DNA of 64,000 nucleotides. Source: Mytilus californianus (taxonomy: Eukaryota). The position numbers and the translations under genes were made by a program. Positions 199-39,892 of this stretch are shown piece after piece. Under the pieces are notes generated by a model, which searched no databases, was not told where the DNA came from, and was given only the letters and a program-made list of their open reading frames with translations. Within the stretch, counting starts at the first letter, position 1. Every line of letters begins with the position of its first letter. The stretch is taken from assembly GCF_021869535.1 (NCBI RefSeq), contig NW_026262604.1, forward strand, positions 46,004,001-46,068,000, in the 5' to 3' direction.

Positions 199-858
199 CT
201 ACCGTCATTGTGTCTGTTGTCGTCTGACATTTTTGTTTTGTTGGAACAAGTAAAATTACAAGATGGGTAGCAAAGGCCACACAATAGTCTTATGTCTTTT
301 GACTCGCATTTGTTTAAATAACACAATTCTTAAATTGTTTTATCAATTTAATTATATACACTTGTATATATATACTCGTTTTCTATGTATAGCTGTCGGG
401 AATATTTCTTTTCTCGATATCAGGTGCTCTTGAAGGGTAAGCAGCACGTGCCTGTGTTTGTTTATTTATATTTCATTTATTTGCTATTTAAAACATGTGA
501 CATGAAATTATAACTCAACTCATTACACTTGAGAGATTTAAAATCACTTACATACACGTGAACTTGTTTCGTTCCTGTAACTTTACTAACGATCGTTCTT
601 CGAACGTTTTTATAGCTTACCTGTATTGATTAAATTAAAAGATAGATTACTCTATTTACCTATTTATAACATTTCACAAAAGAGCTTCCGTTTTTAAAAA
701 ACTTCACATATTGTTTTCTGATTTATTTGATTTATTTGTTTCCCCCCTAAAATGACATCGAAACTAAATTCATCTTTACTAAATTAATCTCTCTGAATTC
801 ACTACAACTGCATCGAACATTCTTATGATGTTCCAATTTTGCCTTTTGTACATGTATT

Positions 859-1041
859 AGATACAATACAAAGGTAACAAAGAAACAGGCCGGTAACAAC
901 CGTTGCCGGATAGTTTTTCCGCACGAGTAGTCAGGTCAAGGTCCGAGGCGATAGCCGAGGACCTTGACCTGACTACAAGTGCAGACAAACTATACGGCAG
1001 GTTGTTTCCGGCCTGTTTTTAGTTACCTTTGTTTTGTATCT
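859..1041. mobile_element. Hairpin MITE (~183 bp), second copy at ~2285-2467
   Basis: Imperfect palindrome AGATACAATACAAAGGTAAC...GTTACCTTTGTTTTGTATCT with inner arms GTCAGGTCAAGGTCC / GGACCTTGACCTGAC around GAGGCGATAGCCGA. Confidence 0.8.
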
Positions 1042-2173
1042 GACTTGTACGACGTTTCAAGAAGGAAGAAGTACATTTTGCATTTAGAAGAGGTAGCAAA
1101 ACTAAAGATATTAGAAACTTAAATGGCCATATACCAGTTAATGTAAGTTACAGTTTAAACTCATTTTTTTTTCTCACTTCCCTTCAGCCGAGAGTTTTTT
1201 TCTCAAAATTTTCAGGAATCTAATAACTTTATAAAAGGAACCATTTCAAGTTAAAGGTGAATGTTATACACATTTGAGAATTTTTGAAATGCAACTTCGC
1301 AAGAAAGTAATGTATGAAAAAAATTCAGATGTAAGCAAGCTACTATTTGATTTTTATTAAGGGAAAAAGGGGGAGGGGGTTAAAATAGATTTTAAAATAA
1401 ACAGGCTTCATCCTTTTTTTCTTGAAAGAACGCAGATGTGCCATTCCAGCCTGTAGGCATATAATTTGGATTAAAAAAATGTTCATGCTTATAGGTTTGT
1501 ATATGTCTCTGATAGTGTTGATCAGGATTAAACACGTGTCATGACATTATATGATCCAATCAGAGCTTACTGTCCAAAATTGATAACATAAGTTGAATGA
1601 TTTTCTTCCAGATTTGCTGCCTATTTGAACATGTATTACACGGACACTTTTTATTTGTAGTATCAATCGTGCATTGGTGAGTTGACAGGGATTTTATCTT
1701 TTGATTAGATTTGATTTTTTTATATATATTTCCTGTCATTTTTATAAACGTTGGTACCAGCATTTCTTTCAGCATTGTCCAGAATACTATTCATGTCCAT
1801 ATATTGAAAAAAAAAAAACCATTTACGGACCGACTATTTAGCTTCAAAAGGGGGTGTGTTCTTTTCTGAGTAAGAAAGTTATTTAGTTTTTCAACTATAT
1901 GATATATTATATATTTTTTTCTCATAAAATTGGGGATCAAAATGTTTTTTTAGGAAAAAACCATAACCCACCTTTTGAAGTTAAATGGACAATCCCTTAG
2001 TGTACTAATATGAATAGTTACTGGAATTGTTTGAAAAAAAATTGGTTATTGATGCTAACGTAAATATTTTAATTAAAAAGACAGGAAATATGTCGGTGAA
2101 ACAAAATGTTCAAATCTTATTGAAATTTAAAGTGCCCATGAACTCACTGATTATGCACGAGTGATTCTATTCA

Positions 2174-2279
2174 TAAAAAGTGTCCGTGTAACAAATAAAA
2201 AGTGTCCGTGTAACAAATAAAAAGTGTCCGTGTAACAAATAAAAAGTGTCCGTGTATCATCTAAAAAGTGTCCGTGTAA
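2174..2279. repeat. 22-bp tandem repeat TAAAAAGTGTCCGTGTAACAAA (5 copies; 4 copies at 3600-3683)
   Basis: Directly visible. The reverse complement of the unit (TTACACGGACACTTTTTATTTGT) occurs once at ~1637 and once at ~3063, so it behaves like an amplified TIR of a ~650-bp MITE. Confidence 0.9.
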
Positions 2280-4099
2280 GTATTAGATACAATACAAAGG
2301 TAACAAAGAAACAGGCCGGTAACAACCGTTGCCGGATAGTTTTTCCGCACGAGTAGTCAGGTCAAGGTCCGAGGCGATAGCCGAGGACCTTGACCTGACT
2401 ACAAGTGCAGACAAACTATACGGCAGGTTGTTTCCGGCCTGTTTTTAGTTACCTTTGTTTTGTATCTGACTTGTACGACGTTTCAAGAAGGAAGAAGTAC
2501 ATTTTGCATTTAGAAGAGGTAGCAAAACTAAAGATATTAGAAACTTAAATGGCCATATACTAGTTAATGTAAGTTACAGTTTAAACTCATTTTTTTTTCT
2601 CACTTCCCTTCAGCCGAGAGTTTTTTTCTCAAAATTTTCAGGAATCTAATAACTTTATAAAAGGAACCATTTCAAGTTAAAGGTGAATGTTATACACATT
2701 TGAGAATTTTTGAAATGCAACTTCGCAAGAAAGTAATGTATGAAAAAAATTCAGATGTAAGCAAGCTACTATTTGATTTTTATTAAGGGAAAAAGGGGGA
2801 GGGGGTTAAAATAGATTTTAAAATAAACAGGCTTCATCCTGTTTTTTCTTGAAAGAACGCAGATGTGCCATTCCAGCCTGTAGGCATATAATTTGGATTA
2901 AAAAAATGTTCATGCTTATAGGTTTTTATATGTCTCTGATAGTGTTGATCAGGATTAAACACGTGTCATGACATTATATGATCCAATCAGAGCTTACTGT
3001 CCAAAATTGATAACATAAGTTGAATGATTTTCTTCCAGATTTGCTGCCTATTTGAACATGTATTACACGGACACTTTTTATTTGTAGTATCAATCGTGCA
3101 TTGGTGAGTTGATAGGGATTTTATCTTTTGATTAGATTTGATTTTTTTATATATATTTCCTGTCATTTTTATAAACGTTGGTACCAGCATTTCTTTCAGC
3201 ATTGTCCAGAATACTATTCATGTCCATATATTGAAAAAAAAAAACCATTTACGGACCGACTATTTAGCTTCAAAAGGGGGTGTGTTCTTTTCTGAGTAAG
3301 AAAGTTATTTAGTTTTTCAACTATATGATATATTATATATTTTTTTCTCATAAAATTGGGGATCAAAATGTTTTTTTAGGAAAAAACCATAACCCACCTT
3401 TTGAAGTTAAATGGACAATCCCTTAGTGTACTAATATGAATAGTTACTGGAATTGTTTGAAAAAAAATTGGTTATTGATGCTAACGTAAATATTTTAATT
3501 AAAAAGACAGGAAATATGTCGGTGAAACAAAATGTTCAAATCTTATTGAAATTTAAAGTGCCCATGAACTCACTGATTATGCACGAGTGATTCTATTCAT
3601 AAAAAGTGTCCGTGTAACAAATAAAAAGTGTCCGTGTAACAAATAAAAAGTGTCCGTGTATCATCTAAAAAGTGTCCGTGTAACACCCGTTAATGTACTG
3701 TTTTTCTATAGCTCTGCTGGGGGCAAAGTCGTACAAAAATTTTTGTTTTCCCTTATTTTTTATTTGCCTGAATTTCATGAATGATCATTCGAATTATATG
3801 TGTTTATATCTTGCATCATGTTTTACAAAGCAGTCCTATTTTCTGATTGTCATATATATGTATTGTTTTGTATTTGACAATGGGTAATGACATCGTAGCA
3901 TATAGAATGACAATAGGACTGTTTTATCACAAGATAAGTCTGGGTTGTTTGAGAAAAACATTGGTATCGTTCTCAGTGTCTGAATTACTTGCCGTTTTAT
4001 TTACGAATGTTTCAAGACTCAAACTATGTATTTTTAATTTATACAGATCTTCTGCTAATATGATTTCATTTTACATACTGTTATTATAGATATAAGAAG

Positions 4100-11805: not shown

Positions 11806-12940
11806 TGTGTTCTATGTTATGGTGAGGTTGAAGAGTTACCGAATGTCGTTATCACAATCACGTCCTCTTTTTTTCCGAATATGACCTACCAAATAAGACA
11901 TATCTGGGCAGACCGAATCAAGCAAAAAGCATGTTTAACCCCGACAAATTGGTCGTTGTTTTTTTTTTTATCATTTTTACTGTCTCACATTTTTGTCATC
12001 CCATGGCCTTTGATAGCTTAAAATATAGACGGGGTTTGTTTATTTTTGAAAATCGTACAATTACCTGTAGTTATTCGTACCCTGCGTATTTGTTGCTTAA
12101 TCGAAGTTGGTCTATTTCGCAATTATACTATATCTCTATTTGTATACTAATTATTCTATACGACTACAAACGTGTTCCTCCAAACTTGATTGTTATGAAG
12201 GGCCGTTCGGGTCATAAAAAATGTTTTTGTTTTGTTACACGTACGCTAGAGGTACGCGTAACAGATCGTTCATGTACCCTAAAGTTACACGTAAGACGTT
12301 GTTCACGTACCCTACAGATACACGTAACACTTTGTTAACGCACCCTACAGTTACGCGTAACTATTTGTTCACGTAGCCTAAAACTACACGTAACTGTAGG
12401 GTGCGTTAACAAAGTGTTACGTGTATCTGTAGGGTACGTGAACAACGTGTTACGTGTAACTTTAGGGTACATGAACGATCTGTTACGTGTACCTCTAGCG
12501 TACGTGTAACAAAACAAAAACATTTTTTATGACCCGAACGGCCCTTCATAACAATCAAACGTGTTTGGAGGAACACGTTTGTAGTCGTATAGAATAATTA
12601 GTATACAAATAGAGATATAGTATAATTGCGAAATAGACCAACTTCGATTAAGCAACAAATACGCAGGGTACGAATAACTACAGGTAATTGTACGATTTTC
12701 AAAAATAAACAAACCCCGTCTATATTTTAAACTATCAAAGGCCATGGGATGACAAAAATGTGAGACAGTAAAAATGATAAAAAAAAACAACGACCAATTT
12801 GTCGGGGTTAAACATGCTTTTTGCTTGATTGGGTCTGCCCAGATATGTCTTATTTGGTAGGTCATATTCGGAAAAAAAGAGGACGTGATTGTGATAACGA
12901 CATTCGGTAACTCTTCAACCTCACCATAACATAGAACACA
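11806..12940. repeat. Long inverted repeat (fold-back): two ~555-bp arms, ~98% identical, ~25-bp loop
   Basis: 11806-~12359 is the reverse complement of ~12385-12940. The ORF track gives the same peptide on opposite strands (11931+ and 12527-). Confidence 0.95.
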
Positions 12941-13435
12941 ACACCTATGCTGAATAACCTTTATTCCCTATGCACAATGAACTCGTCTGCTGGAGAATAC
13001 TATTTGACCAATCAAATCAGGCCTTTTTTACAACATTTTAAAAGAACGATGCAAGTACATTTTTAAATAATGTAAAACGAAATTTTAATGGCTGCGTTTG
13101 AGAGGTTTTGTATGCAGATTACGTTAGTGACGAAAAGTTATCATGTGTCATTTTTATTCTGTGACTAATACAGATTTGAACCTTAATGATCGGTTAATTT
13201 TGCGAAATTTGAATTGATTGGATAAAGAAATGATGTTGACACAGATAATCCATTATTCAGGGAAAGGGATGACAGGTTTTCTGTTGCTGTTAGCTGCACA
13301 AATAAACAGCTACGCGTATCTCCAGGGTACGTGAACAGACAGGTACGCGTACCTCCAGGGTGCGTGAACAAACTGTTACGCGCACCTCTAGCGTACGTGT
13401 AAGAAAATGATTTATGACCCGTACGGCCCTTCATA
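12194..13435. mobile_element. Non-autonomous DNA transposon, probable IS3EU type, with ~30-bp subterminal repeats
   Basis: TIRs TATGAAGGGCCGTTCGGGTCATAAA / TTTATGACCCGTACGGCCCTTCATA, flanked by GATTGT (12188-12193) and GAATGT (13436-13441). Paralogous empty sites read TTGATTGTTGTGCATG (e.g. ~37149, ~52864). TAY..RTA ends with a 6-bp TSD are the IS3EU signature. Confidence 0.6.
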
Positions 13436-15494
13436 GAATGTTGTGCATGTTAACATTATTCGTAAGTTATGATAATTTGACCAGTTTGTCATCAAGAAAT
13501 AGACATCATGCAGTCAACATTATCAAGGCCAGGTGAAGTTGTATGAATAAAATCGTGATTTCATAGCGGATTTGCGTTGTAGAAAAACAGAACAAGTTCA
13601 AATTAACTAGGATAAATCTATTCTAAATATATAATACAATTTGTTTCATGAGTCAGTTTTCACCTGCTTGAAAAATAAAATAAAATGTATAATTACAATG
13701 GAAACAAGGGTGCCTTTTGATTTATCCAGTGTTCGACCAATCAGTTAATATCATAGTGTTTTAAATGGGTGTTTCTATTGATCCTGTATTACGTTCAGGT
13801 ACAAGTATTGGGTCGAGGTAAGCTGTAGTGGCACCTTCATTAACAAATAACTTAAAATAATCACCAAAAACTAACTGAAGATGAACATGACCGTAAGAAG
13901 ACTCATGCAGAATCAAAATGAACTATTTGGGTTAATTATCATTTTAATTCAAGGAATGTCGAATTATCCTTAGAAGTAATATTATGCGATGAATTATCCT
14001 TTTATTTGCCTGGTAAATAACTCCTTATTGTCTTTTGAGCCTTATCGACTTTTACACATTATCTCCCGTCAAAATGACGTCACTGACGTATGTAAACAAA
14101 ATGGCAACGGCCAGGTGAGAAGTCCATGGACTAGAGTGACGAAGAAACAAGTATTTGAAATCCATCTGGTACCAAGGATAGCTTTCATAAAATGCGCTTT
14201 TCAGAGCCATCATTTGTTATATATATGAGGCATTTTAAGTCACAAAACAATTCTCTGACGTAAGTGTTTTGACAATTTGTTCCTACAGTAAGACATGTAC
14301 AAGAGTGTCTTTAACATTTATGTTCAATGAACGAAAGGCCCTTTGGCATATTTTGAGCGTGACAAATGAACTGATTCCTCGAAAAACCAATTGCCGTCCT
14401 TTAATAGGTAATTGATTAATCTTGGTTTTACTACAATTTATCGAGTAAAAGAGTTAAAAAAGATAAAATTAATGCGGATTTCATCAAGTGCACTCAACTG
14501 TCAATAAGAGAGGTACAACATAATGAGAATCTATGCTACTAAGTAATGCATGTCGATGATTGTAGACGAAGGACGTTAAATTATTCATGGCTTACAAGAC
14601 TTAGTGTTATATATAATCTTACAAACAAGCATGTGTGAAGGCTGACAAGTCTCGTATATATAAAGATGAATCTTAAAACAATTTACACCTATCATATTTG
14701 CTTTAGTTCATGTTGTAGACTCTTCTCCTAATGGCTTCTCAAGTTAATGGTTCGAATGTGGTCTTCGAAGAAGGGATTGCTAATTTTTCCAACTCCTTGT
14801 ATAGCAAACTAGACAGAGCTGGAAATGAATTCATTTCGCCATACAGTATCACGTCAGCATTGTAACTCCTGATGCTTGGAACTGGCAAAACGACTGAAAA
14901 CCAGATAAAGTCGGTAATTTTTGAATATGAAGAACCAAATGATATCAACCAGGGATATAAACTTCTTAATGATGAACTCTTAACGAGAACAACATCGGGA
15001 GTTGCATTGTCTATTGCAAACAGGTTATACGGCAGTAAGAGTCTAAATCTTTTGAACTATTTTTCTTCGAAAGCGTCTTCATACTATGGCAGTAATGTTG
15101 AATTATTAGATTTAGTATCGGAGGCGGAGAAATGACGATTGACAATAAATGATTGGATTTCCACAAATACAAACAATCTAATAAAAGATATGATTCCGAG
15201 AAATGTTCTTTGTTCAAACACACTATTAGTAATACCAAATGCTATGTATTTATAAAGGTTACTCGGGAACACGTGTATTTGTTTACTTTTAACACGTGTG
15301 TTTAAATCAAAACATGTTTATGTTTAATTTGATTGGACCATCAGTAAGTTATTACCGGTTTAAGTTATATCAATCATGATAACTTCATGCTAGAATTTTA
15401 GCGCTAAAATTATAATAAGATATCTAGAATTGTCATTCGAGGTTCGCCTATCCGACAGAAAGGTTCGTTTTTTCTTAAATCGCCACTTGGTAAA

Positions 15495-16271
15495 ATGTCC
15501 GAATCTTCTCCACGTCTGGAATTGAATGAAGACATACTACTCGAAGGAGATAATAGTTTACCGCCACCTAATATTCATAAAGCAGCTGATAAGTCGTCTG
15601 ATTTGGTAGATACTGTAGAGCTTTTTAAGACAATTTTAGACAGCAAGTTAGGTGAGTTGAAATCTGAACTCATACAAGAACAAGATTGCCTTAAGAGAAA
15701 AATTAAGGAGGACGTCACTCTAAAATTTAAGGGGGAAGGAAACAGAATTCAGTACACCTTTAACGAGGAATTATTAGACACTGTTAATAAACTTTCAAAA
15801 TTCATCCCTAACTCCAATACTCAAGCCTATAGATTAGTTCTTGACATAACTGATAAGATCAAAAGCCGTAATAAGAAAATACGCATAGCTGATGCTTCCC
15901 CTGCTGGTTGGGGAACCGTTAGGGAATACGAATCCAATGCCGTGGCTTCAGATTCTGAAGATGAGAGAAAGATACGACAAGCTGAGACCAGAGCTATCCG
16001 TACCTCCAAGGAGAAGTCAAAATCTCGCCAGCAACCTTACCCAAAAAATCCGCCTCGTCAACAACCTGCGGAATCTTATGGTAACCCTGCTTACGCTCAG
16101 CATTATCAACGTAATCAGCAACAGCCCTTTCGTGGGAGCTTCGCAAGGCGTGAGCCTTGCTCAATCGACACGTGCCACTACTGCAAGCAACAAGGCCACT
16201 GGAGAAAAAACTGTCCTCTTCTCGCCAGTCTCAGGTCATCCAACAGCAACTCCACAACCTACCAGAAGTAG
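15495..16271 (+). CDS. gag: Gag-like protein (258 aa) with CCHC zinc knuckle
   Basis: CHYCKQQGHWRKNC, plus the ADASPAGWGTVREYE...DSEDERKIR block typical of DIRS-group gag. Confidence 0.9.
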   Translation: MSESSPRLELNEDILLEGDNSLPPPNIHKAADKSSDLVDTVELFKTILDSKLGELKSELIQEQDCLKRKIKEDVTLKFKGEGNRIQYTFNEELLDTVNKLSKFIPNSNTQAYRLVLDITDKIKSRNKKIRIADASPAGWGTVREYESNAVASDSEDERKIRQAETRAIRTSKEKSKSRQQPYPKNPPRQQPAESYGNPAYAQHYQRNQQQPFRGSFARREPCSIDTCHYCKQQGHWRKNCPLLASLRSSNSNSTTYQK

Positions 16272-18327
16272 TAAAGTAGGGCCTGAACGTCACTCTCCAG
16301 TCATTGTGAATGATAAGTATTTAGACACTATTAATGACCAATTTTCTACATGTTTTGTTGATAACGATTATATAGAATCTTTTTTAGATCAAGTTCAATA
16401 TTTTGAAAATTGTCAGTCATATGATAAATTTAAAGGGGTGAAAGGTAGATTAGCTTGTCATGTAAAGTATTGGGAAAATATAGGTGCTTGTCCTTTTGTG
16501 CTTGATACAATAAAAAATGGTTATGTTATTCCATTTATAGATACACCTTTTAAAATGTACCACAGAAATAATAGATCAGCACGGCAGAATACTGAATTTG
16601 TCACAAAGTCAATTGAAGATTTAGTTCAAATAGGTTGCGTAATTAAAGTGCCTTTTCAACCATATGTGGTAAATCCATTGAGTGTTGCTACTCAAAAGTC
16701 CGGTAAGAAACGACTTATTTTAGATATGAGTCAATTGAATAAACACATAAAGCGCGAAAAAATAAAATTTGAGGATTGGAAGTTAGCTATACAATATTTT
16801 GACAAAGATATGTATCTGTTTAAGTTTGATTTAAAATCTGGTTATTTTCACTTAGACATATGCTCACAGCAACAGACTTTCTTAGGTTTTCAGTGGGAAG
16901 GTCAATTTTATTGCTATACTGTTTTAGCTTTCGGAATTACTACCGGTCCGTACATTTTTACTAAATGTTTGAGGCCACTAGTAAAATTTTGGCGTGGAAA
17001 CGGTATAAAAGTTGTTTTGTATTTAGATGATGGATTTGGCATGAGTCCAGATGAAAATACATGTAATGAGCAATCGTCCTTCGTAAAAAGGTCTTTGATT
17101 GATGCTGGTTTCCTTATTAACGAGGAGAAGTCTGTTTTTAAACCTGTTACCGAGTTAGAATGGTTGGGAATAGTTTGGAACTCGAAAGAATACAAATTAT
17201 CTATTACTCAACGTCGAGTTGACGATTTGATTTTCTCATTGAATGTAATTTTGGCTAAATTTCCCTATGTTACAGCTAGATCTTTAGCTCAGGTTGTAGG
17301 TAGAATTATTTCTATGACTCCCGTAATCGGAAATGTGGCTAGAATTATGTCAAAGTTCTGTTACATGGAAATTGAAAGTAGAATTGGGTGGGATATTCTC
17401 ATTACAGGGTACAAACCCGTCGAGGTTTTATCAGAGTTAAAGTTCTGGTTAGAAAATGTCACCATGATTAACTATCGTAATTTATGTCATTACAGTAAAT
17501 CTTCTGTTGTCATATACTCAGATGCTAGTAATATTGCCGCTGGTGCATACACCGTTGAATTAGAAAATAAGATTTTCCATAAGATGTGGACATGTAGTGA
17601 AACGGTACAAAGCTCCACATGGAGAGAGCTGAAAGCTATAGAGTTGGCCCTTTTTTCTTTTAAGAATAGTTTCACAGGAAAAACTATAAAGTGGTTTACT
17701 GACAATCAAAATTGTGTCAAAATTGTTAATTCGGGAAGTATGAAAGAAAATCTTCATGTTATAGCAAAATCTATTTTTTCATTTTGCATTCAAAAAGGAA
17801 TATCAATTGACATTCAATGGATTCCCAGAAAAGAAAATGAAAAGGCTGATTACATCAGCAAAATGGTTGATTTCGAGGACTGGGGAGTCACACATATATT
17901 TTTCAATTTTTTAAATGATATGTGGGGTCCTTATTCGATTGACAGGTTTGCAAGTGTCGAAAATAGAAAAGTTATGAGATTTAACTCCTTATTTTGGCAA
18001 CCTGATTCTGAAGCAGTTGATGCATTTTCTCAAGTTTGGACCAATGAAAATAATTGGCTAGTTCCACCAATTAATCTTGTGATACGATCGATTAAACACA
18101 TTATAGCTTGTAAAGCTCGAGGCACGTTAGTTGTGCCTAAGTGGATTTCTGCTGCATTCTGGCCTTTGATATTCGATAAACATCTGATTTATCAAGATTA
18201 CGTAAAAGATGTTATTGTGTTTAAAAATACTGATGGTATTTATAAGCAAGGTTCGAATAAGAATACGATATTCGGAATTGAACCGTTTGGTTCGCCAGTT
18301 TTGGCTGTTTTGCTAGATGCATCTTAG
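15892..18327 (+). CDS. pol: Reverse transcriptase / RNase H / Dam-like methyltransferase polyprotein (811 aa; true start uncertain)
   Basis: RT motifs KKRLILD, FDLKSGYFH, LAFGITTGP and YLDD (17020). RNase H motifs YSDAS, WRELKAI, FTDNQN and QWIPRKENEKAD. MT-like tail IDRFAS..N...RFNS...AVDAF..W.....LVPP...LVVPKW...FWP. It overlaps gag by 380 nt in another frame. Confidence 0.93.
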   Translation: MLPLLVGEPLGNTNPMPWLQILKMRERYDKLRPELSVPPRRSQNLASNLTQKIRLVNNLRNLMVTLLTLSIINVISNSPFVGASQGVSLAQSTRATTASNKATGEKTVLFSPVSGHPTATPQPTRSSKVGPERHSPVIVNDKYLDTINDQFSTCFVDNDYIESFLDQVQYFENCQSYDKFKGVKGRLACHVKYWENIGACPFVLDTIKNGYVIPFIDTPFKMYHRNNRSARQNTEFVTKSIEDLVQIGCVIKVPFQPYVVNPLSVATQKSGKKRLILDMSQLNKHIKREKIKFEDWKLAIQYFDKDMYLFKFDLKSGYFHLDICSQQQTFLGFQWEGQFYCYTVLAFGITTGPYIFTKCLRPLVKFWRGNGIKVVLYLDDGFGMSPDENTCNEQSSFVKRSLIDAGFLINEEKSVFKPVTELEWLGIVWNSKEYKLSITQRRVDDLIFSLNVILAKFPYVTARSLAQVVGRIISMTPVIGNVARIMSKFCYMEIESRIGWDILITGYKPVEVLSELKFWLENVTMINYRNLCHYSKSSVVIYSDASNIAAGAYTVELENKIFHKMWTCSETVQSSTWRELKAIELALFSFKNSFTGKTIKWFTDNQNCVKIVNSGSMKENLHVIAKSIFSFCIQKGISIDIQWIPRKENEKADYISKMVDFEDWGVTHIFFNFLNDMWGPYSIDRFASVENRKVMRFNSLFWQPDSEAVDAFSQVWTNENNWLVPPINLVIRSIKHIIACKARGTLVVPKWISAAFWPLIFDKHLIYQDYVKDVIVFKNTDGIYKQGSNKNTIFGIEPFGSPVLAVLLDAS

Positions 18328-18635
18328 ACATGGCCCTAATATATATAGATATATTTTAGCAGGCATGGTCTGTTTGTGACATGGCCCTAATATATATATA
18401 GATATATTGTAGCAGTCATGGTCTGTTTGTGACATGGCCCTAGTATATGTATATTGTAGCAGGCATGGGTGTTTATGTTGACATGGCCCTAGTATCGGTA
18501 ATGATATTGTAGCAGGCTTGGTTTTTTATTTGACATGGCCCTAGTATCTATAATGATATTTTAGCAGGCATGGTAATTTGTTTTACAGTTTATGGCCCTA
18601 GTATCTATAAAGATATTGTAGCTGGCGTTGAAATA
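18328..18635. repeat. Six ~50-bp tandem units (ACATGGCCCTA..GATATTKTAGCAGGCATGG) between pol and YR
   Basis: Units start at about 18328, 18380, 18432, 18481, 18533 and 18591. Two conserved boxes alternate with variable AT-rich linkers. Confidence 0.85.
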
Positions 18636-18740
18636 TTTGAATATATATTATATTTTACTGTGTATAGAAATCTGAAATATGCTAATAATTCGTCCTCTGT
18701 ATATGTATATAAAATGTTATTGCAATTTTACGTTTTTCAG

Positions 18741-19756
18741 ATATTTTTTCAGTAGGACATTGGTCAGACTTTAATTCACAAGTTGCCTCTAATAATGATC
18801 TCAGCAGTTTGTTCAAACAGTTACCAGAATTCCTTCTTTCGTCCAAGGCTGCGAGTACTCAGAAGAAATATAGATATGCCTTCAATTCATGGTGTAAGTG
18901 GACTAGTCAATATTCTTTTTCACCATTGCCAGCATCTCATTTACATATTTCTTTATATTTAATTCATTTGTCTGAAACTGCAAAATCGGTTTCAAAATTA
19001 AATGATGCTTTTTACGCCATAAAATGGGCACATAAATTAGCTGGCGTTGCTGATCCCAGTGAAAATAATCTAGTTGCATCTGTTCTTGAAGGGGCTCATA
19101 GAAAAATAGGTCATTCAGTTGTCAAAAAAGAACCTATCACACCGCATATTTTGAAAAATATTGTATGTAAATATGCTAATAATACTTGTAATTTAAAAGA
19201 TGTAAGAATAGCATGTATGTGTTTATTAGCCTATGCTGGCTTTTTAAGATTCTCCGAGTTAGCTAACTTGAGAAGGTCTGATATACAGTTTTCCCCTACT
19301 TACCTTACACTTCATTTAGTCAAGAGTAAAACTGATGTATATAGGGAAGGGAAAGATGTTGTCATTTCAAAAACAGGGAATATTACATGCCCGGTAGATG
19401 TACTTCAGCGTTATCTAAAGTTAGCTAACATTCCTGAAGAATCGAATGATTTTATTTTTAGATCTATTTGTTATTGTAAATCTTTGAATATATACAAACT
19501 TAGAAAGAGTAGTCATATTTCTTACACCAGAGCCAGAGAGTTATTGTTATCTGCACTTGACAGTTTAGGTCTTGATAAAAAACAGTTTGGCTTACATAGT
19601 TTGAGGTCAGGAGGAGCTACTGCCGCGGCAGAAGCTGGAATAGATGACCGGTTGTTTAAGAAACACGGGAGATGGAAAAGTGATAAAGCCAAAGATGGTT
19701 ATGTTAAAGAGAGTATACTCAACAGATTGTCAGTATCTAAGAATTTAGGATTGTAA
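18741..19756 (+). CDS. Tyrosine recombinase (YR) of the retroelement; probably a spliced 3' exon
   Basis: The frame is open from 18713 to 19756 and carries LRFSEL, HSLRSGGA and GRWKSDKAKDGY (R-H-R-Y tetrad). There is no in-frame ATG before ...ACMCLL. The track start at 18809 is TTG. A TTTTTCAG acceptor ends at 18740. Confidence 0.9.
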
Positions 19757-22700
19757 TTTATATTGTTTGTCCCCCCTTTTTCTTTATGTCCCTTTCTTTA
19801 TCAATCGAAGCTTTCTGTGCTGTCGGGGCGAGCTGATAACCAAAAACTGTGTTGAGTTTTTACTTTGTAAATGCTTTATGTTCGTTTGAAGTATTGAATA
19901 AGAACATAAATGTATTTATAAAGGTTACTCGGGAACACGTGTATTTGTTTACTTTTAACACGTGTGTTTAAATCAAAACATGTTTATGTTTAATTTGATT
20001 GGACCATCAGTAAGTTATTACCGGTTTAAGTTATATCAATCATGATAACTTCATGCTAGAATTTTAGCGCTAAAATTATAATAAGATATCTAGAATTGTC
20101 ATTCGAGGTTCGCCTATCCGACAGAAAGGTTCGTTTTCCCACCCACCCACCCCTTTTATTAAGACTTCATAGGAATGTGAATCAGTATGTTATGTAGAAA
20201 ATAGTTGATAAAATACATGTATGTAAATCGAAATGATTTTTTCTTCAACTTATAGAACATTTTTCTATTGTAGATTGTGTTTATATGTGATGGCAGCGGT
20301 CGATGACAGCAAATTGGACATTTGTTTATTGTTTATAATAAAAATAAGCTTTCTGTGCTGTCGGGGCGAGCTGATAACCAAAAACTGTGTTGAGTTTTTA
20401 CTTTGTAAATGCTTTATGTTCGTTTGAAGTATTGAATAAGAACATAAATTTATTTTAAAGGCACATGGAAAAAAGAATTTAACGCAAATGGCACTTCACA
20501 AAGGAACTTTTTCGTGAGAGCGAACGAGCAAAAACTAGTTCAAATGATGTACGGTGAATTTGATGTAAAGTCTGGTGAAGACCTTACACTTGACTGCAAA
20601 CTTTTACAACTGCCATATCAAGGAAACAAGGTCTCTATGATCATTGTTTGGCAAAATTCTGGTGATGAACTCTCCGAACTAGAAAGTAAATTTACTTCGG
20701 ATAATTTCAAGACTCTTGTAAGCGGCATGAAGACACAAAAGACAATAGTACGAATTCCTAAATTTACAATGAAAAGCGAGTACGATTAAAAGCCAATTTG
20801 TACAGCGTTAGGAATAACGGAAATCTTTGACAAAAAATGCTGACTTTAGTGAAATGCTAAAAGCTGATGTTACACGCGTGCACGTTACTGATGCTCGTCA
20901 TAAAGCTTATCTTGAAGTGAACGAAGAGGGGAGCGAAGCAGCAGCCGCTACTTTGTTATCTGTATCATTTACTTCAGCAAGGATTCCTGAGCCCCAGCCA
21001 TTCCAATTTGTTGCCGATCATCCTTTCTTGTTTGTGATTCAAGATGACAAAACAGGAATACCGCTGTTCATTGGAAGGTATGCCAGGCCATAATTTCACA
21101 GTAACATATTTTTGAATGAAAACAAATGCGTACTGATCAAAATTAATTAGAACCTGTTATATATTAATCAAGTACTTGACTTTACGCAAAGATTTTTACG
21201 AAAGTGTATACATATCTGTCTTAATATACACATTGTGCACATGTAGGTTTTTATACCTATCTGTGTGGATACACACCTTGGTTTTTGTATAACTAAATAC
21301 TTTATATTTGAATAATTTTGGATATTTTTGTAATGATCTGTCTGTAAATAAACACTAATAAAAAGTTAGTTTGTGGTTTCAAATCTTTAGTAAAACATAA
21401 ATGTTGCTTTTCCTTGAAGTTTGTTTTATTTGATTTTTTTCTCATAATGTTTGTTTGCTTTCTCAGTATCATAAGCATCAAAAGCCGTGGTCCTGTTTTG
21501 TATGGAATTATGTTTAATGTGCCATATATCTATTGATATAGGTTGATACATGGATAGAAAATCAGATCTACGATATCCTTTTTGAATACCCTGCGATGGC
21601 CATGCGTCCACATCGTAAGACAACCTAAGTTTCTATTTAGATTGTGATAATTTCAAAGGAGACAAGCAATATTAGAAGGAAAATTGAATTAAAATAGACG
21701 GCAACCATGCCATGACAGCATGTTATAAATAATAAACAGGAGGCAGCAAGAAAATTTTGGGAAATATGGGGCTTTATTGTCCTGAATATTGCAAAAAGCA
21801 CTGAGAGCAGCAGGGTGAAATATGTTTTGAAGATTTTATGCCACAATCTTATTTTTTAGATCAAAATAGGCATACTCTGTTTATGTCCGAAGTTATTCTA
21901 CCACTTGGTGTTTAAAATGATATGGATTTTTAACCTTCTTTATCTACATCACTAGAACAAACTCAAACAGGAGTTACAAACACAGCTAGCGCATCAGATT
22001 TATCGCGACAAAATTTTTCTTTGACATGAAATTTTATTATACAATAGTAAATGGATTTAAGTCTTAAATGGTAAATTTTATGTTAACAACATCTGAAAAG
22101 TCTGAATAATGAATTACTCAGTCATATTCAGTCGTTCGGTCAATTTGTAGAAGACATGTCGACAGCAGTTAATTTAGTACTGCTCATAAAATGCTTGCAG
22201 TCAATTCAGTATTTTGTAAATGTGTACATTTAAATCACAATTACTGAACCATCTGAACATAGACTGAACATATCTTAAGTGACAGCACGCAAATTGTCTG
22301 AACAGTAGTGAAATAACTGCAGTGCATCCGTCTGAAAATTGAACTAAATGATTGACAATTATTTCATAAAAGATAGGCGAAAGATACCAAATGGACATTC
22401 AAACTAATAAGTTGAAAATAAACTGATAACGCCATGGCAAAAAAGGGAAAAAAAGACCAAAAGACAAACAACAGTACACAAAACACACTACGAATTTTAT
22501 TTTTCGGTCTTTTAAGAACTGTTTATATCACGCTTACTGTTTCAGATAAGATTGGACTACTAGTGGCTATATTATGTAATACGTCTACGCATCTTCACAT
22601 GAATAATGAAAAAAATACCAACTGAAACGATTTCACAATATCAATACGACAGTAAGATTTATTTAGCAAACTGAAAAGATACTTACACATTATTTTCTTT

Positions 22701-22919
22701 CTTAACAACAATAGTAGAGACAAAAACATAGAGTAATAACTAATGTTTAGTATACCTTATCAAATAGTTAGGTAGACAATTCCGACAAACTTGAGCGCAC
22801 TGTTATATGTTACCCAATTTGTACGTTGATGTTTTGTGAGAATGTTATCAGTGACAAATATTTGCATGTTTCCAAGTCTTCAGAATAAGGAAACCAACCC
22901 AAATAAGTTCAATTTTGAA

Positions 22920-23300
22920 ATCACAAACATGCTTAACCCTGCCAAATGTGCCCGTCCCAAACCTTGAGCATGAAATCCACTTGTTGTCATTAGTTAGTCT
23001 CTAAAATGTTTTCATGTACTTTTTTCGTATAAATCGGCCATTGGTTGTTTTCTACTGTTTTACATTTTGTCGTCCCATCGACTTTGGATTCACAAACATG
23101 GTTTACCACGCCAAAGATGTCGTCCCAAACCATAAAGATGTCGTCCCAAACCATAAAGATGTCGTCCCAAACCCTGAGCATAAAATCCACTTGTTGTAAT
23201 TATTAAATGTCTGCAAAATATTTAAAATACTGTTTTCGTATAGATCGGCTATCATTTTTTTAACTTTTATACATTTTGTCGCCTTTTGTCATCTCAAAGC
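22920..23300. repeat. ~170-200-bp spacer tandem units (paralogous blocks at ~46490-46860 and ~52130-52700) with an internal 21-bp x3 repeat at 23113-23173
   Basis: CAAACATGTTTAACCCCGCCAAATGTGCCC... recurs 2, 2 and 3 times in the three spacers. AAAGATGTCGTCCCAAACCAT x3 occurs only here. Confidence 0.75.
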
Positions 23301-25149
23301 CTTTTATAACTTACAATACGGAAGAGTATTGTTCATTTTTGAAGACCGTACGGATCTGTAGTTTTTCGTAACCTGGTCATGTGTTGTTTACTTGAAATTA
23401 GTCTATTTCGCAATTGTTACACATCTCCTTATTTTCACATTAATTATTATATACGCCTACATACGTGTCCGTCCACACATGTTTGATCGTTGTGCATGTT
23501 AATTCGTAATAGATGATAAGTTAACTTATTTTATTTTAATTGTTACCAGTTTTTCATCAAGAAATAAACCACATGCAGTCAACATTGTCAAGGTTAGGTG
23601 AAGTTATAATAATAAAGTCGTGATTTCATACCGGATTTGCGTTGTTGGAAGATAGGTCACGCTCAAAATAGCTTTAAAACTATTCTAAATATGCAATACA
23701 GATTGTTTTCGTGAATCAGTTTCTACCTTTAATGAAAATTTAAAGAAATGAATAACAACTGGAAACAAGGATGCCTTTCGATTTATTCAGTCTTTGATTA
23801 ATCAGTTATGATTCATTCGTATTAATAACATTGGAAGTTCAATCCGTTGATACGACTATTGATATGCTGCAATCTCAAAAACCATTCAAATAGTAATTTC
23901 GTCTCTGCTACGTCTCACCTGACTTATCTGATGATTTAAACGCTTTCAAAAATAATTTTAACGGCTCGATTGTTCATCATCAATGAAGAAATCGCTCGTC
24001 CATTCTCTAACTTTTACAGATTGACTCTCAGTATAACCCAAAACTACGTATTCGGGCTACTTGTGAATTTTTTGTACGAATTCTCTTCTGAAGAAAAAAC
24101 GATGATAATACAAAGTAAGATGGTAAGATATCGTATCGGCGGGTTTATCACTTTTCGTTTACTAAATGCGAGCATCCTTTTTTGTGCTTGTATTTGCGTT
24201 TTTTATTTTTTTTTTTATTATTACTTTTGAGTGTCGGTATAATAAAAGTAATTCCTTTTCTGTATAAATGTGTATGGTATGCTTTGTTATATTTGTTTTT
24301 GTTATTCCAGTATTCCGAGTATAAAAGACTTATTGATGCTATCTAAACAACTAGTTAAACATAACACAAGCTTATTACCTTGTTCAACGTATTGAATTTT
24401 GTAAGTGGTTGTATAAAGCTATAACTTAATGGCTTTTAATTCTCTTCAGACATGTGAAGTAGAAGGCACCTGTTGATTCATGTCACGTTATTCACAATTT
24501 TTTAAATTTGGGACGAGTTAGTATTTTACGAAACATGAAACTGTTGATATATTGAAATATTATTAAGTGAACATTCATTAATGATCAAGCAACCTTAACA
24601 GACTAGTGTCTGTACGAAACATGTACTTGAATGGTTTTACCATGTTTATAGAAACTTGTGTTGTGTTAAAGGCCACATGTTTGACCTATAGATATCTTCC
24701 TCCGGTTTTAATGTCGATGGATGTTAACTTATCTTAACAGATACACAACAATAAGAAAACATAAAACAATACCAAAAAAACTTAAGGCCAAAGCAATTTG
24801 AAAACAAAACTGTACAAATGTGATTTGCATAATACGTCATGAGACAAGGATAACTGTATTCTACTTATTAGCGGACAATTTAGTAATAAGTTTGTGCATT
24901 TTTTCATTCTTGCCATATAAGTTAATAATATACATTACGGTGACTTGCTTCTACGTTCATTGTCCAATGCCTTAGTTGATTTTCGCCCCTTCTTTTTATT
25001 AAGATCACGCAACTTTCAACAACAGACGTACAACATAATGTGAATCTAAGCTATGAAGTCACAGGTCACTGATTGTAGACATATAGTTTTGAGGAGGACG
25101 TTAATTATTTCATGGCTTACAAGTGTTATATATATTCTTACAAACAAAC

Positions 25150-25190
25150 ATGTGTCAAGGCTGACAAGTCCAGTATATATACAGATGCAT
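25150..25190 (+). promoter_or_regulatory. Putative core promoter of serpin B: TGTCA-N4-TGACA palindrome plus TATA-like box
   Basis: TGTCAAGGCTGACAAGTCCAGTATATATA lies ~60-85 bp upstream of the ATG and is conserved upstream of all six copies. Confidence 0.55.
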
Positions 25191-25238
25191 CTTAAAATAG
25201 TTTACTCCGATCATATTTGCTTTGTTGTAAGCTCTTAA

Positions 25239-26399
25239 ATGGCTTCTCAGGTTAATGGATCGAATGTGGTCTTCGAAGAAGGGATTGCTAATTTTTCCAA
25301 CTCCTTGTATAGCAATCTAGACAGAACTGGAAATGAATTCATTTCGCCATACAGTATCACGTCAGCATTGTTACTCCTTATGCTTGGAACTAGCAAAACA
25401 ACTAAAAACCAGATGAAGTCGGTAATATTCGAATATGAAGAACCAAATGATATCAACCAGGGATATAAACTTCTAAATGATGAACTCTTAACGAGAACAA
25501 CATCGGGAGTTACATTATCTATTGCAAACAGGTTATACGGCAGTAAACGTCTAAATGTTTTGAACACTTTTTCTACGAAAGCGTCTACATACTATGGTAG
25601 TGCTATTGAACTTTTGGATTTTGTGTCGCAGGCGGAAAAATCACGACTGACAATAAATGATTGGATTTCAAACAATACAAACAACCGAATTAAAAATATG
25701 ATTCCAAAAGGTGTTCTTAATGCAAATACTTTATTTGTAGTAGTAAACGCTATATATTTTAAAGGTATGTGGAAAACAGAGTTCAACAGGAATAACACTA
25801 CACAAAGGAACTTTTTCGTGAGAGCGAATGATCAAAAGCTGGTTAATATGATGTACGGTGAGTTTGATGCAATGTCTGGTGAAGATCTTTCACTTGACTG
25901 TAAGGTTTTGCAACTACCGTATAAAGGAAACAAGATCTCTATGATCTTTGTTTTGCCAAATTCTGGTGATGGACTCTCGGAACTAGAAAATAAACTTTCC
26001 GTGGATAATTTCAAGACACTTGTAAGCGGTCTGAAGACACAGAAGACAATAATAAGAATTCCCAAATTTACAATGACAAGCGAGTACGATTTAAAGCCAA
26101 TTTGTACGGCGTTAGGTTTTACGGAAATCTTTGACGAAAAAATTGCAGACTTTAGTGAAATATTCCTAGCTAATGAAACACGCGTGCGCGTGACTGATGC
26201 ACGTCATAAAGCTTACATTGAAGTGAACGAAGAGGGAAGCGAAGCAGCAGCTGCTACTACAATTACTATTGGAGTGACTTCAATACAGGATCCTAAACCC
26301 CAGCCATTTGAGTTTGTTGCTGATCATCCCTTCCTGTTTGTGATTCAAGATGACGAAACAGGAATACCGCTGTTCATTGGAAGATATGCCAGGCCATAG
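25239..26399 (+). CDS. Intact intronless serpin B (386 aa, intracellular/leukocyte-elastase-inhibitor-like)
   Basis: Motifs ISPYSITSAL, NAIYFKG.W, LPY.G, IPKF, hinge EVNEEGSEAAAAT and signature [13 protein letters not shown]. No signal peptide. RCL TITIGVT-SIQD. Confidence 0.95.
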   Translation: MASQVNGSNVVFEEGIANFSNSLYSNLDRTGNEFISPYSITSALLLLMLGTSKTTKNQMKSVIFEYEEPNDINQGYKLLNDELLTRTTSGVTLSIANRLYGSKRLNVLNTFSTKASTYYGSAIELLDFVSQAEKSRLTINDWISNNTNNRIKNMIPKGVLNANTLFVVVNAIYFKGMWKTEFNRNNTTQRNFFVRANDQKLVNMMYGEFDAMSGEDLSLDCKVLQLPYKGNKISMIFVLPNSGDGLSELENKLSVDNFKTLVSGLKTQKTIIRIPKFTMTSEYDLKPICTALGFTEIFDEKIADFSEIFLANETRVRVTDARHKAYIEVNEEGSEAAAATTITIGVTSIQDPKPQPFEFVADHPFLFVIQDDETGIPLFIGRYARP

Positions 26400-26630
26400 T
26401 TTAACAGTAACATGTATTTGACATTGATTTTGAACAAAAATAGTATAAAATATGTACCAGAAATATTGGTTATTTTTATTTTTACATTTATAAAATTGAA
26501 CAGTTATTGACATGCATAAATAATTTCCTGCTCAGATAGAAAAATAAACGCTATACATTTAGATCTGCTTTACCTGACATGTTGTTTAATTTGTTTTGTT
26601 TCTTATGATGTTTGTTTGCTTTATCTGTCC

Positions 26631-29800: not shown

Positions 29801-31037
29801 TGATTTAAAAGCTTTCAAGATATTAAAACGGTTATATTATTTCTTATCATAAAAAAAAAATAACTTTTTTGTCTCTTTTATCAGTTTTAAGGATTTACGA
29901 AGGATATAGCTCAAGCTGCGTGTTACGGCTTTTAATGGCGTTGTTGTACGAAATCTATTATGAAGTAGAACCGGTGATGTTACATTATAAGATGATAAGA
30001 TATCCTATCAGCTGGTTTAACACTTTGCATTTACTAATACGAGCTTTCTTTGGTAAGGTATTTTGTGCTTGTATTTGTGTTTTAACATACCGTTGTAAAA
30101 GAGTAAATTTCAATTTCTGAACAAACTTTTATTATACGCTCTGTTATATATGTTTCTGGTATTCCAATGATCTAGCTTACATGAATTAGGATTAATCATT
30201 TGGCATATCCTTTAGTGAATATTCATTGATGAGACACCAACCAAACACAATAAAAGACACCTGTGGATCAATATATGGTCTTCAACAACAGACTAGTGTC
30301 TGCAATAATCGTGTATGTCAAACTCTTAACTGACAACCATTTCTAAAGACACTTGTCTTATGTTAAAGACCACATGTTGACATCTAGATGTCGTTCGCGG
30401 CTTTTTTGTCGATAGGTGTTGTTGTGTCATTGAATCTAGCCCACACACCACATTCATATAAAAAACTATAAAGATACAGGTCATAAAAGGAAACAAAAAC
30501 TCGATGAAATAGAATTAAAAACTGTACAAATGATATTGTTCCAAATTGCTATCAGGACAGGGATAGATGTATGCTACTTGATGTGCTGTTTGCATTTTTT
30601 GCTTATCAGGTAATGCATGTATATTTCAAAGACTTGCTTCTACGTTTATTTGAACTTATTTCATTGTTGAAATTCGTTCCTGCATTCCTTTAAATGGGAA
30701 CTGATAGCAGATTCTGGTTTTATTCATTTAGTCGTTTTTAAACTACTATGACATCATTTCTACAATTAATCGAGTAGAAATGTTTAACAAATGATGCTTT
30801 TTTTAAATGCATGCAACTGTCAGGAATAGTAAATCACAATATAAATACTACAACACATGTAACTGATTGAAGACATTGTTTTGGGAAGGACGTCAATTAA
30901 TTCATGGCTTACAAGTGTTAAATATATTCTAACAAACAAACAAGTGTCAAGGCTGACAAGTCCAGTATATATAAAGATGCATCTTAAAACAATTTACACA
31001 TATCATATTTGCTTTATTTCATTTTGTAAGCTCTTGA

Positions 31038-32269
31038 ATGGCTTCTAAGGTTAAACAATCGAATGTGATCTTCGAACAAGGGATAGCTAATTTTTCCAAC
31101 TCCCTGTATAGCAAACTAGACAGAACTGGAAATGAATTCATTTCGCCATACAGTATCACGTCAGCATTGTTACTCCTTATGCTTGGAACCGGGAAAACGA
31201 CCAAAACCCAGATGAAGTCGGTTATTTTCAAATATCAAGAACCAAATGATATCGACCAGGGATACAAACTTCTTAATGACGAACTCTTAATGAGAACAAC
31301 AACCGGAGTTACATTATCTATAGCAAACAGGTTATACGGCAGTAAGCATCTTAATCTTTCGAACACTTTTTCTACAAAGGCGACTACATATTATGGCAGT
31401 GGTATTGAATTCTTGGATTTTAAAACGGAGACGGAAAAGTCACGATTGACAATAAATGATTGGATTTCCACAAATACAAACAATCGAATTAGAAATATGA
31501 TTCCAAAAGGTGTGTTTAACGAAGATACTTTATTAGTAGTAGTAAACGCTATTTACTTTAAAGGTACGTGGAAAAAAGAGTTCAACAAGAAAGACACTTC
31601 ACAAAGAAACTTTTTCGTGAGAGTGAATGATTGAAAGCTAGTTCAAATGATGTATGGTGAATTTGATGCAAAATCTGGTGAAGACCTGACACTTGACTGC
31701 AAGGTTTTACAACTGCCATATCAGGGAAACAAGATCTCTATGATCTTTGTTTTACCAAATTCTGGTGATGGACTCTCAGAACTAGAAAGTAAACTTACCA
31801 CGGATAATTTCAAGAAACTTTTAAGCGGTTTGAAGACACAGAAGACAATGATACGAATTCCCAAAATTAAAATGACAAGCGAGTACGATTTGATACCAAT
31901 TTGTAAAGCGTTAGGTTTAACAGAAATCTTTGACGCAACAAATGCGGACTTTAGTGGAATATTCCAATCTAACGAAATACGCGTGTGCGTGACTGATGCA
32001 CGTCATAAAGCTTATATTGAAGTGAACGAAGAGGGAAGCGAAGCAGCAGCTGCTACTGCGATAACTGTTGGATTTAGAACAACATCAGTAAAGGATCCTA
32101 AGCCCCAGCCATTTCAGCTGCTACTACGATAACTGTTGGAAGGATTACTTCATTACAGGAACCTGAGCTCCGGCCATTCCAATTTGTTGCAGATCATCCT
32201 TTCCTGTTTGTGATTCAGGACGACGAAACAAGAACACCGTTGTTCATTGGAAGATATACCAGGCCATAG
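31038..32269 (+). pseudogene. Serpin pseudogene C with two RCLs in tandem (second RCL, C', at 32115-32269, out of frame)
   Basis: In-frame TGA at codon 199 (31632). RCL1 AITVGFR-TTSVKD is fused to ..[29 protein letters not shown]...GRYTRP* in another frame. Confidence 0.92.
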
Positions 32270-38600: not shown

Positions 38601-39892
38601 TCGTGTTGCTCATGTTAGTACAAACCCGGTTATAAACTATTAATATATTGACATATCTCTTAGTGAATATACGTTGATGAGACAGCAACCCAACAAAATA
38701 AGACATTAAGAGTTTAGCATACGGTCTTCAACAACAGAATAGTGCTGTACTAAACCATTTTTATAGGCACTTTTAGTGTTTAAGAACACATATTGACATT
38801 TAGATATCTTTTGGCCTTTTTTGTGTGTTTTTTTTTTATTGACTAGAGCCTACAGCTTTATTCTATTCATAAAACAACTAGAAGATACATGTCAAAACAA
38901 AGCATAACACAACACAAAAAAACTCGACAGCGAAATTTAAAAGCAAAATTGTACATATGCGATATTTACAATCAAATGTATTATTGCATTCTTTATATAT
39001 AAGGTAGTATATATACAACGGTGAATTGCTTATACGTTAAGGTTGTAGTTAGGTAAAATTTTAAAAAATCTAGAATTTTAAAAAAAAGTCAGAAGAGCAT
39101 TAGTAAAAGAACAACATAAACTAAAAATATTGACAGGTTAAGGAACTCCTTTTTGCAATATTTGATTTTTAAAAAATGAAGGGAAAAGGCTGACTCGGAC
39201 TTTTACCTTATATTTAGCATTGGCATTATTTGGGTCTCAAATCGTAAGAAAAAACTCTAGAATCTGCTTAAACTTTGGTAACGACCTTTTATGAGCTATT
39301 GAAGTCTTCTACGAAAAGAAAAGTGGGTGATAAGGGGCAAACTATTTCACCCTGTATCGTAGGAAACAACTCAAGAAGTCCGAAATCTGACAAAATTCAT
39401 AAACCTGTCCTAAGTACAGCATTAAATATTCCTTAATATTATGGAAATTTGTAGCTTTCTGGTCTTATTCATTTACTAGTAAGCGTTTTATCACTACAGT
39501 ATCAGTTATCTTTATACAAGCGTAGAAACATTGGACTGATTCCTCGATTAACCAAAGGCCGTCCTTTAATAGGCAATTTGATAAATTTGGGTTAACCACA
39601 ATTATTCGAGAAAAAATTTGAAAATTAGATTAATGATTTTTTTTAAGGGCACGCAATTTTCAAAATTGAATTAACAAAAACATTGAGAATCTGAACTACT
39701 AAGTCACACGTGTTACTTATGGTAGAACAATTGTTGTGAGAAGGACTTTAATTAATTTATGGTACATATATATATATATATTCTTACAAACAAACATGAA
39801 TCAAGGCTGACAAGTCTTGCATATATGAGGATGCATCGTACAAGTGTTTTGCTCCTAGCGTATTTGATGTATTTGATGTTGTAGGCTTGTCA

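Follow-up and report, generated by a model that had tools for sequence, protein, structure and literature searches.

Spliced messages as the likely source of the tyrosine recombinase of a PAT-like retrotransposon in the mussel Mytilus californianus

A 64,000-nucleotide (nt) stretch of the Mytilus californianus genome (RefSeq assembly GCF_021869535.1, contig NW_026262604.1, positions 46,004,001 to 46,068,000 of the forward strand; this whole stretch is termed the window, and positions are counted from its first letter) contains a retrotransposon of the DIRS order that raises the question of how its tyrosine recombinase (YR) is made. The gag, pol, and YR open reading frames (ORFs) of this element lie in three different frames, and the YR frame, which opens at 18713 and ends at 19756, reaches its first ATG only about 160 codons in. 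A reading of the letters alone (the sequence-only reading) had proposed a retrovirus-like answer: one gag start codon and one donor in gag, after 15651, would feed both an acceptor ending at 16300, for pol, and an acceptor ending at 18740, for YR, so that the two products share a leader of 52 residues. The letters, coordinates, and phases of that reading are all correct, and its interpretation is partly supported. We conclude that the recombinase is most likely made from spliced messages, and consider probable a composite arrangement, in which Gag and Pol come from unspliced RNA and YR is reached via one composite 3′ splice site fed by three in-phase 5′ sites. The basis of this proposal is a set of sequence features, their conservation, their splice phases, and RefSeq protein models.

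The Recombinase Exon and Its Composite 3′ Splice Site

The features needed at the outset are the following (a slash within a motif marks the exon boundary):

15244..20448, + strand: whole element, a PAT/DIRS-like YR retrotransposon of 5205 base pairs (bp), with gag, pol, and YR all unbroken
15495..16271, + strand: gag ORF, 258 amino acids (aa), with a CCHC zinc knuckle
15892..18327, + strand: pol ORF, 811 aa, with reverse transcriptase (RT), RNase H, and a weak Dam-like methyltransferase match; its frame is +1 relative to gag
18732..19756, + strand: tyrosine recombinase coding exon, starting at 18732 or 18741 according to the 3′ site used, with the stop codon at 19754-19756
18730..18740, + strand: composite 3′ splice site, with AC/ ending at 18731 (AT..AC intron) and CAG/ ending at 18740 (GT donors)

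In a search with the YR exon, the top matches were M. californianus RefSeq models, to which the exon is 100% identical, and many further relatives at 47-70% identity came from other bivalves and from uncurated assemblies. The acceptor ...TTTTACGTTTTTCAG ends at 18740, and the bases that follow it complete a phase-1 codon to give D-IFSVGHW. Nine nucleotides separate the AC/ of the composite site from its CAG/, and the two share one phase. This arrangement recurs at the nucleotide level: the DNA of the nine families for which it was readable has the pattern ...AC-R-TTTT-x-CAG/ at the YR start. In nine families the AC precedes the CAG/ by 9 nt; in L009 the distance is 14 nt, with the phase kept and the AC in frame. 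Correspondingly, the unspliced ORFs of relatives encode x-F-(S/T/A) before the conserved YR start, and the codon of the next residue begins with G. Upstream of the YR start nothing is conserved, and in the nine families the frame is closed by a stop within 3 to 36 codons. The pattern at 18740 is what would be expected of a conserved 3′ splice site rather than of coding sequence. The sequence-only reading had pointed to a YR frame without an ATG for about 160 codons behind this acceptor, and the acceptor is kept in all nine families with readable DNA.

As a motif, this acceptor is ordinary. YYYYYCAG occurs 54 times in the window versus 42 expected, a frequency at which both proposed acceptors are unremarkable; what raises both the gag donor and the acceptor at 18740 above chance is not the motif as such but the comparison with relatives.

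Five metagenome contigs with 39-50% YR identity (L009, L011, L013, L014, and L022) also have a short pyrimidine-rich run ending in AG before the conserved YR start. The L009 acceptor is in phase 0, and the strongest gag donor of L009 is likewise in phase 0.

Annotated Isoforms and an AT..AC Intron

Two annotated isoforms of the window element enter the YR exon from the pol frame, through these 5′ sites:

16309..16323, + strand: AT-type 5′ splice site within a conserved 15-mer; exon 1 of isoform X2 ends at 16312
16700..16708, + strand: GT donor of isoform X1, CCG/GTAAGA; exon end at 16702, inside RT and in pol phase 1

Isoform X2 (P0001/P0121, 481 aa, with XP_052094370.1 as a RefSeq model), for which more than 20 loci carry an annotation, maps with 100% identity to 15892-16312 and 18732-19753, and its intron, 16313-18731, which was fixed by mapping P0121, starts with AT and ends with AC. 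This intron starts 41 nt after the gag stop, and thus leaves gag whole and places YR in the pol frame. Isoform X1 (P0250, 608 aa, a cluster of 15 sequences, with a RefSeq model at LOC127701553) maps with 100% identity to 15892-16702 and 18741-19753; its intron, 16703-18740, is of the GT..AG type and uses the very acceptor that the sequence-only reading had named. What that reading missed is the conserved AT..AC intron and the GT donor at 16703, both of which lead into YR out of the pol frame instead of from the gag ATG. We infer that these RefSeq models rest on real transcripts.

The AT-type 5′ site is conserved. Four families have the 15-mer at 16309-16323 without a mismatch; seven share an identical 9-mer core, from which an eighth family departs by a single change, although the sequences flanking this core differ. 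Based on the codon usage of each family, the probability that all seven would use the same three codons here is ∼10^-5.6, a figure that overestimates the significance, as the families share ancestry. A Mytilus edulis model of another family (P0142), for which no position on a contig was found, has the same type of junction as X2. U2-type AT-AC introns form a rare class, in which the 5′ site resembles GTAAGT except that it begins with A. In the mussel element, positions +2 to +8 of the AT site match the ordinary 5′ consensus, and by inspection neither a U12-type 5′ box nor a clear branch box was seen, on which grounds a U12-type intron was rejected. Lacking the U12 box, the 5′ site resembles the rare U2-type class, and the intron 16313-18731 looks like a member of it, with an AT start, an AC end, and ordinary positions +2 to +8. 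It differs from other introns of that class in that it lies within a mobile element, is conserved across families, and shares its 3′ region with a canonical CAG/ located 9 nt downstream.

A different explanation is that there is no functional splicing here, and that the motifs are coincidental or the models are annotation artefacts (for instance, reads from internally deleted copies, or template switching), with YR translated from unspliced RNA through a non-AUG start, reinitiation, or internal entry. In its favor, pyrimidine-rich AG motifs are common, and neither the AT..AC junction nor that of a scallop model (described below, with 3 nt of microhomology) is canonical. However, the mussel AT..AC junction has no microhomology, both AT..AC ends and the CAG/ are kept at the nucleotide level among families at 50-70% protein identity, YR lacks an ATG for its first ∼160 codons, and in every family the upstream stops are close. 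We accordingly hold the absence of splicing to be highly improbable.

The region that these introns would remove also contains a tandem repeat:

18327..18626, + strand: tandem array in the intron, 53-bp units, 5.7 copies, extending from the pol stop toward the YR acceptor

Comparable arrays occur between the pol stop and the YR acceptor in L006 (9849-10275), L008 (2891-3071), and L029 (2999-3226). The arrays of the four families have units of 49-58 bp, share a short GGCCCTAG-like core, and lie inside the proposed intron; protein binding sites or splicing control are possibilities for their role.

In the oyster Magallana gigas, the RefSeq/UniProt models P0057, P0065, P0066, P0077, and P0149-P0153 comprise up to seven isoforms, in which one YR start is preceded by varying segments of pol; among the sites used is one within the S-M-x-P-V motif conserved in RT. 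These models suggest that the oyster elements are extensively alternatively spliced.

A Candidate gag Donor, Entry Into pol, and a Probable Composite Model

The third potential source of YR messages is the donor in gag:

15649..15657, + strand: donor TAG/GTGAGT of the sequence-only reading; the exon ends at 15651, after 52 codons plus one base, in phase 1 (codon 53)

Between the gag ATG and the YR acceptor of the window element, this is the only site with at least 6/7 consensus matches. The motif AGGTRAGT occurs six times on both strands of the window, versus 3.1 in shuffles, and at this rarity its presence within the first 157 nt of gag is uncommon. An analogous junction is annotated in a sister family (62% YR identity), in which RefSeq models from M. 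edulis (P0019 and P0135) and M. trossulus (P0136) begin at the gag ATG, continue for 16 codons to GAG/GTGAGT in phase 1, and are joined to the homologous CAG/ acceptor.

We surveyed donors in nine families by locating every GT with at least 6/7 matches to MAG/GTRAGT from the gag ATG to the YR acceptor; three families were examined first, followed by six more as a prospective test. Thirteen such strong donor-like sites are found in 28.9 kilobases (kb), and seven of them fall within the first 60 gag codons, which represent 5.6% of the length. All but one of these seven match the phase of the YR acceptor of their own family. The phase-matched donors occur in 6/9 families at non-homologous codons: five are in phase 1 (codons 53, 17, 13, 15, and 27), and the sixth, at codon 35, is in phase 0 and paired with a phase-0 acceptor. 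In L012, there is no strong gag-proximal donor. A few of the relatives used carry breaks, namely one gag frameshift in L007, one in-frame pol stop in L012, and one YR frameshift in L019.

Closer to the window element, a copy from M. coruscus (∼90% identical, with one insertion and one deletion in pol) retains the 15651 donor, which at this level of identity may be taken as weak evidence. Two pipeline models from other Mytilus assemblies are cut at the gag codon of this donor, which shows only that gene predictors like the site. Use of the 15651 donor in the family of the window element is plausible but unproven. With respect to the proposed splice from 15651 to YR, the acceptor and the sister-family analog stand in its support, and no protein was found that joins the 52-residue leader to YR.

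The other half of the sequence-only reading, in which a splice from 15651 to 16300 gives RT, RNase H, and methyltransferase, concerns two further features:

16291..16300, + strand: second acceptor, CACTCTCCAG, in phase 1 in the pol frame
15498..15891, + strand: ATG-poor interval from the gag ATG to the first pol-frame ATG, with one ATG in 394 nt versus 8.1 expected

The second acceptor is present and in the phase claimed. It has no counterpart in L006, and its counterpart in L008 is purine-rich. Nine pyrimidine-rich AGs occur in the gag/pol overlap, 4/9 of which are phase-1 compatible, and 16300 is one of them; the site is at chance level. As an entry to pol it was rejected, being both unconserved and no better than chance.

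The interval upstream of pol points to a different route. Pol overlaps gag by 127 codons, and in six families the pol frame is open for 116-195 codons upstream of the gag stop, an opening for which a splice to 16300 would have no need. With expected counts derived from the ATG density of each pol ORF itself, the intervals of five families contain 7 ATGs versus 38.3 expected (Poisson P 7e-10). RefSeq models likewise start at the pol-frame ATG at 15892. The gag AUG has an A at -3 and a T at +4 in the window, and in other families has a T at +4 and a varied -3. The depletion of ATGs argues for leaky scanning to the pol-frame AUG at 15892, by which Pol is presumably reached. The sole ATG of the interval in the window, at 15526, belongs to the pol frame and begins a short ORF (∼28 codons); the four intervening ATGs of L006 likewise all belong to the pol frame.

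In full, then, the scheme of the sequence-only reading, with one gag start and the 15651 donor feeding both Pol at 16300 and YR at 18740 behind a shared leader, seems to us very unlikely. The donor and both acceptors are present and phase-compatible, and the YR half is backed by the sister-family annotation and by the donor survey. The lack of conservation of the 16300 site in L006 and L008, the open pol frame, and the ATG depletion stand against the Pol half, and among the 120 best pol relatives listed, none of the M. californianus models has the gag leader at its start. The single M. coruscus model with such a start (P0162) is a frame-jumping pipeline chimera. Comparison with relatives upholds the acceptor at 18740 and, in 6/9 families, a phase-matched donor early in gag, but not the acceptor at 16300.

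A direct fusion of pol to YR via a short intron at the pol 3′ end was also considered and rejected, as no donor of the right phase with at least 5/7 matches is located near the pol stop. Among the bivalve matches, there was no long pol-YR fusion.

Under the composite model, unspliced RNA would give Gag from the first AUG, at 15495, and ribosomes that cross the almost AUG-free stretch of 394 nt would give Pol from the AUG at 15892 by leaky scanning. YR, which has no start codon of its own, would be translated from spliced RNAs that all land on the composite 3′ site (AC/ at 18731 or CAG/ at 18740). Three 5′ sites would supply them: (a) the AT-type site at 16312/16313 (X2), which would remove RT, RNase H, and methyltransferase and place YR behind a 141-residue pol-frame leader; (b) the GT at 16702/16703 inside RT (X1); and (c) the GT at 15651/15652 in gag, in which case the gag AUG would drive a Gag(1-52)-YR protein. 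Two of these three in-phase sites are annotated in the family of the window element; a site of the 15651 type is annotated only in the sister family.

Several observations weigh against this model. A search with gag residues 1-52, which admitted targets of 142-451 aa and thus had a 390-aa Gag-YR fusion within its range, returned six proteins, all gag-like and 173-260 aa long, and a recombinase domain was present in none of them. Logan contigs of the window element's family (L001-L003 and L035) are colinear with the genome and unspliced. The strong gag donor of L031 is in the wrong phase, and L007, the closest family (with gag broken once), has no GT at the homologous codons. Since the families share ancestry, the statistics given above overstate their independence. 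The RefSeq XP models are predictions, and those with GT..AG introns might have been extended ab initio. AT..AC introns of the U2 type are very rare. Finally, a scallop RefSeq model, P0089 (L033, Pecten maximus LR736852.1, 1501-1863 and 4412-5425), places YR behind a pol-frame leader, with the join at the homologs of the codons at the mussel AT site; this junction conforms to neither GT..AG nor AT..AC and shows microhomology of 3 nt.

Part of this evidence would fit an alternative in which YR is fed from the pol frame only, mainly through the AT..AC intron and less so through 16703, with the start at 15892, and in which 15651 is cryptic or has a role at the RNA level (e.g., U1 binding near the 5′ repeat). 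All models of the window element's family are pol-frame models, no leader-YR fusion is on record, the AT..AC intron is conserved at both ends, the ATG depletion fits initiation at 15892, and both L031 and L007 lack a phase-matched gag donor. A non-coding role, however, does not predict that 6/7 of the gag-proximal strong donors would be phase-matched, and in the sister family a gag-ATG leader joined to YR is annotated in two species. For these reasons, we view feeding from the pol frame only as unlikely, and prefer the composite model with its three 5′ sites.

More tentatively, the same features could represent a splicing switch of bivalve PAT-like elements, undescribed in this order. A conserved AT..AC intron and alternative GT donors, one of them at the very beginning of gag, would use one composite 3′ site to turn genomic RNA into recombinase mRNAs, and two start codons, the gag AUG and the overlapping pol-frame AUG reached by leaky scanning, would set the Gag : Pol : YR ratios. 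The expression of the recombinase in DIRS-order elements is poorly understood; reviews give overlapping or separate ORFs and no mechanism. If the spliced routes are real, this group controls its integration enzyme as retroviruses control env, via one of the rarest intron types, and a testable expression model becomes available for a whole order of retroelements. It would also explain the odd N-termini of so many bivalve gene models named "integrase/recombinase xerD homolog," and would serve as a warning to annotators that such models are transposon isoforms, not host genes.

Related Systems, Element Structure, and Surroundings

Aspects of the composite model have counterparts in other systems. 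The env mRNA of avian sarcoma/leukosis virus uses the gag AUG as its start and includes a few codons from the beginning of gag. The pair 15651/18740 is similar to such retroviral subgenomic splicing, with a 5′ site early in gag and an in-frame acceptor before the downstream gene, and the proposed use of unspliced RNA as both Gag mRNA and genome is a further likeness. In the mussel element, however, the gene behind the acceptor codes for a recombinase instead of an envelope protein, the gag donor is a candidate only, and the acceptor is fed by two further 5′ sites from the pol frame, one of them AT-type. Spliced RNAs also occur in long terminal repeat retrotransposons, including the gag-only mRNA of copia and the env mRNA of gypsy. 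There, too, splicing alters the ratio of proteins from one primary transcript, but the elements belong to another order and the genes removed are different, and we know of no AT..AC intron in these cases. Leaky scanning to an overlapping downstream ORF occurs in many viruses. The likeness lies in an AUG-depleted interval that separates the first AUG from that of an overlapping ORF read in a different frame; in the mussel element the interval is ∼400 nt, and the second AUG would serve both Pol (unspliced) and leader-YR (spliced).

By structure, the element is a PAT-like member of the DIRS order (definitions of PAT-like and DIRS elements were taken from PMC3266345, PMC6681497, and PMC13465315). 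It shares with PAT, kangaroo, TOC, and DIRS1-like elements a gag, a pol with RT, RNase H, and possibly a methyltransferase-like region, and a tyrosine recombinase, as well as split direct repeats in the order A1 ... B1-A2 ... B2, the lack of a target-site duplication, and a length of ∼5.2 kb. The repeats are as follows:

15244..15471, + strand: split direct repeat A1, 228 nt, 100% identical to A2
19808..19909, + strand: split direct repeat B1, about 103 nt, 98-99% identical to B2, adjoining A2
19910..20137, + strand: split direct repeat A2, 228 nt, 100% identical to A1
20346..20448, + strand: split direct repeat B2, which forms the element's 3′ end

The B1/A2 junction thus equals the right end of the element joined to its left end, and a unique stretch of 208 nt lies between A2 and B2. 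No target-site duplication was found at the three insertions compared together with an empty-site paralog. A repeat search over 12000-24000 detected no inverted repeat pairing the element ends, and without inverted terminal repeats the element differs from the DIRS1-like type, which has such repeats together with an internal complementary region. Unlike PAT-like and DIRS elements in the published descriptions searched, whose ORFs are described as overlapping or separate with splicing unmentioned, this element has a YR without a start codon behind a conserved acceptor; it further differs in that ∼400 nt of non-coding tandem repeats separate pol from YR, and in the 208-nt A2-B2 stretch. In line with the statement of the sequence-only reading that it knew of no such scheme in this group, our literature search found no account of DIRS, PAT, or Ngaro elements in which YR is expressed through splicing; the older key papers of Goodwin and Poulter lay outside the search.

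The protein domain matches were as follows. Pol has an RVT_1 match (E 3e-16, above the cut-off) and a YLDD motif in its translation, weak RNase H-type matches, and a Dam-like methyltransferase match of E 0.0027 (17.8 bits versus a cut-off of 28.1 bits). The third ORF has a Phage_integrase match (E 4e-13, above the cut-off), and the YR translation contains the R, H-x-x-R, H/W, and Y motifs. The profile scan of the element proteins gave no match to an integrase-core (DDE) family, and an Rfam scan of the element gave two sub-threshold chance matches only. Other M. californianus copies (L004 and L005, assembly GCA_021869535.1), which are located within introns of host genes, have exactly the same span and are 99.9% identical. 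The best explanation for these observations is that the element is intact and has recently been active in M. californianus.

The insertion site is itself one copy of a 1.5-1.9-kb repeat, six copies of which, 80-89% identical, occur in the window. The copy that flanks the element is split into 14356-15259 and 20448-21122, and its paralogs lie near 24993-26421, 30853-32116, 39514-41408, 48625-50486, and 58956-60321, where uninterrupted copies represent empty sites. The first 17 nt of the element resemble the target sequence here, but not at two other insertion sites examined. Elsewhere, the window harbors a 1.4-kb tandem duplication (99.3% identical) at 847-3682 and a 1.1-kb near-perfect palindrome (96.8%), which has 33-bp internal repeats, at 11806-12940; both are unrelated to the element.

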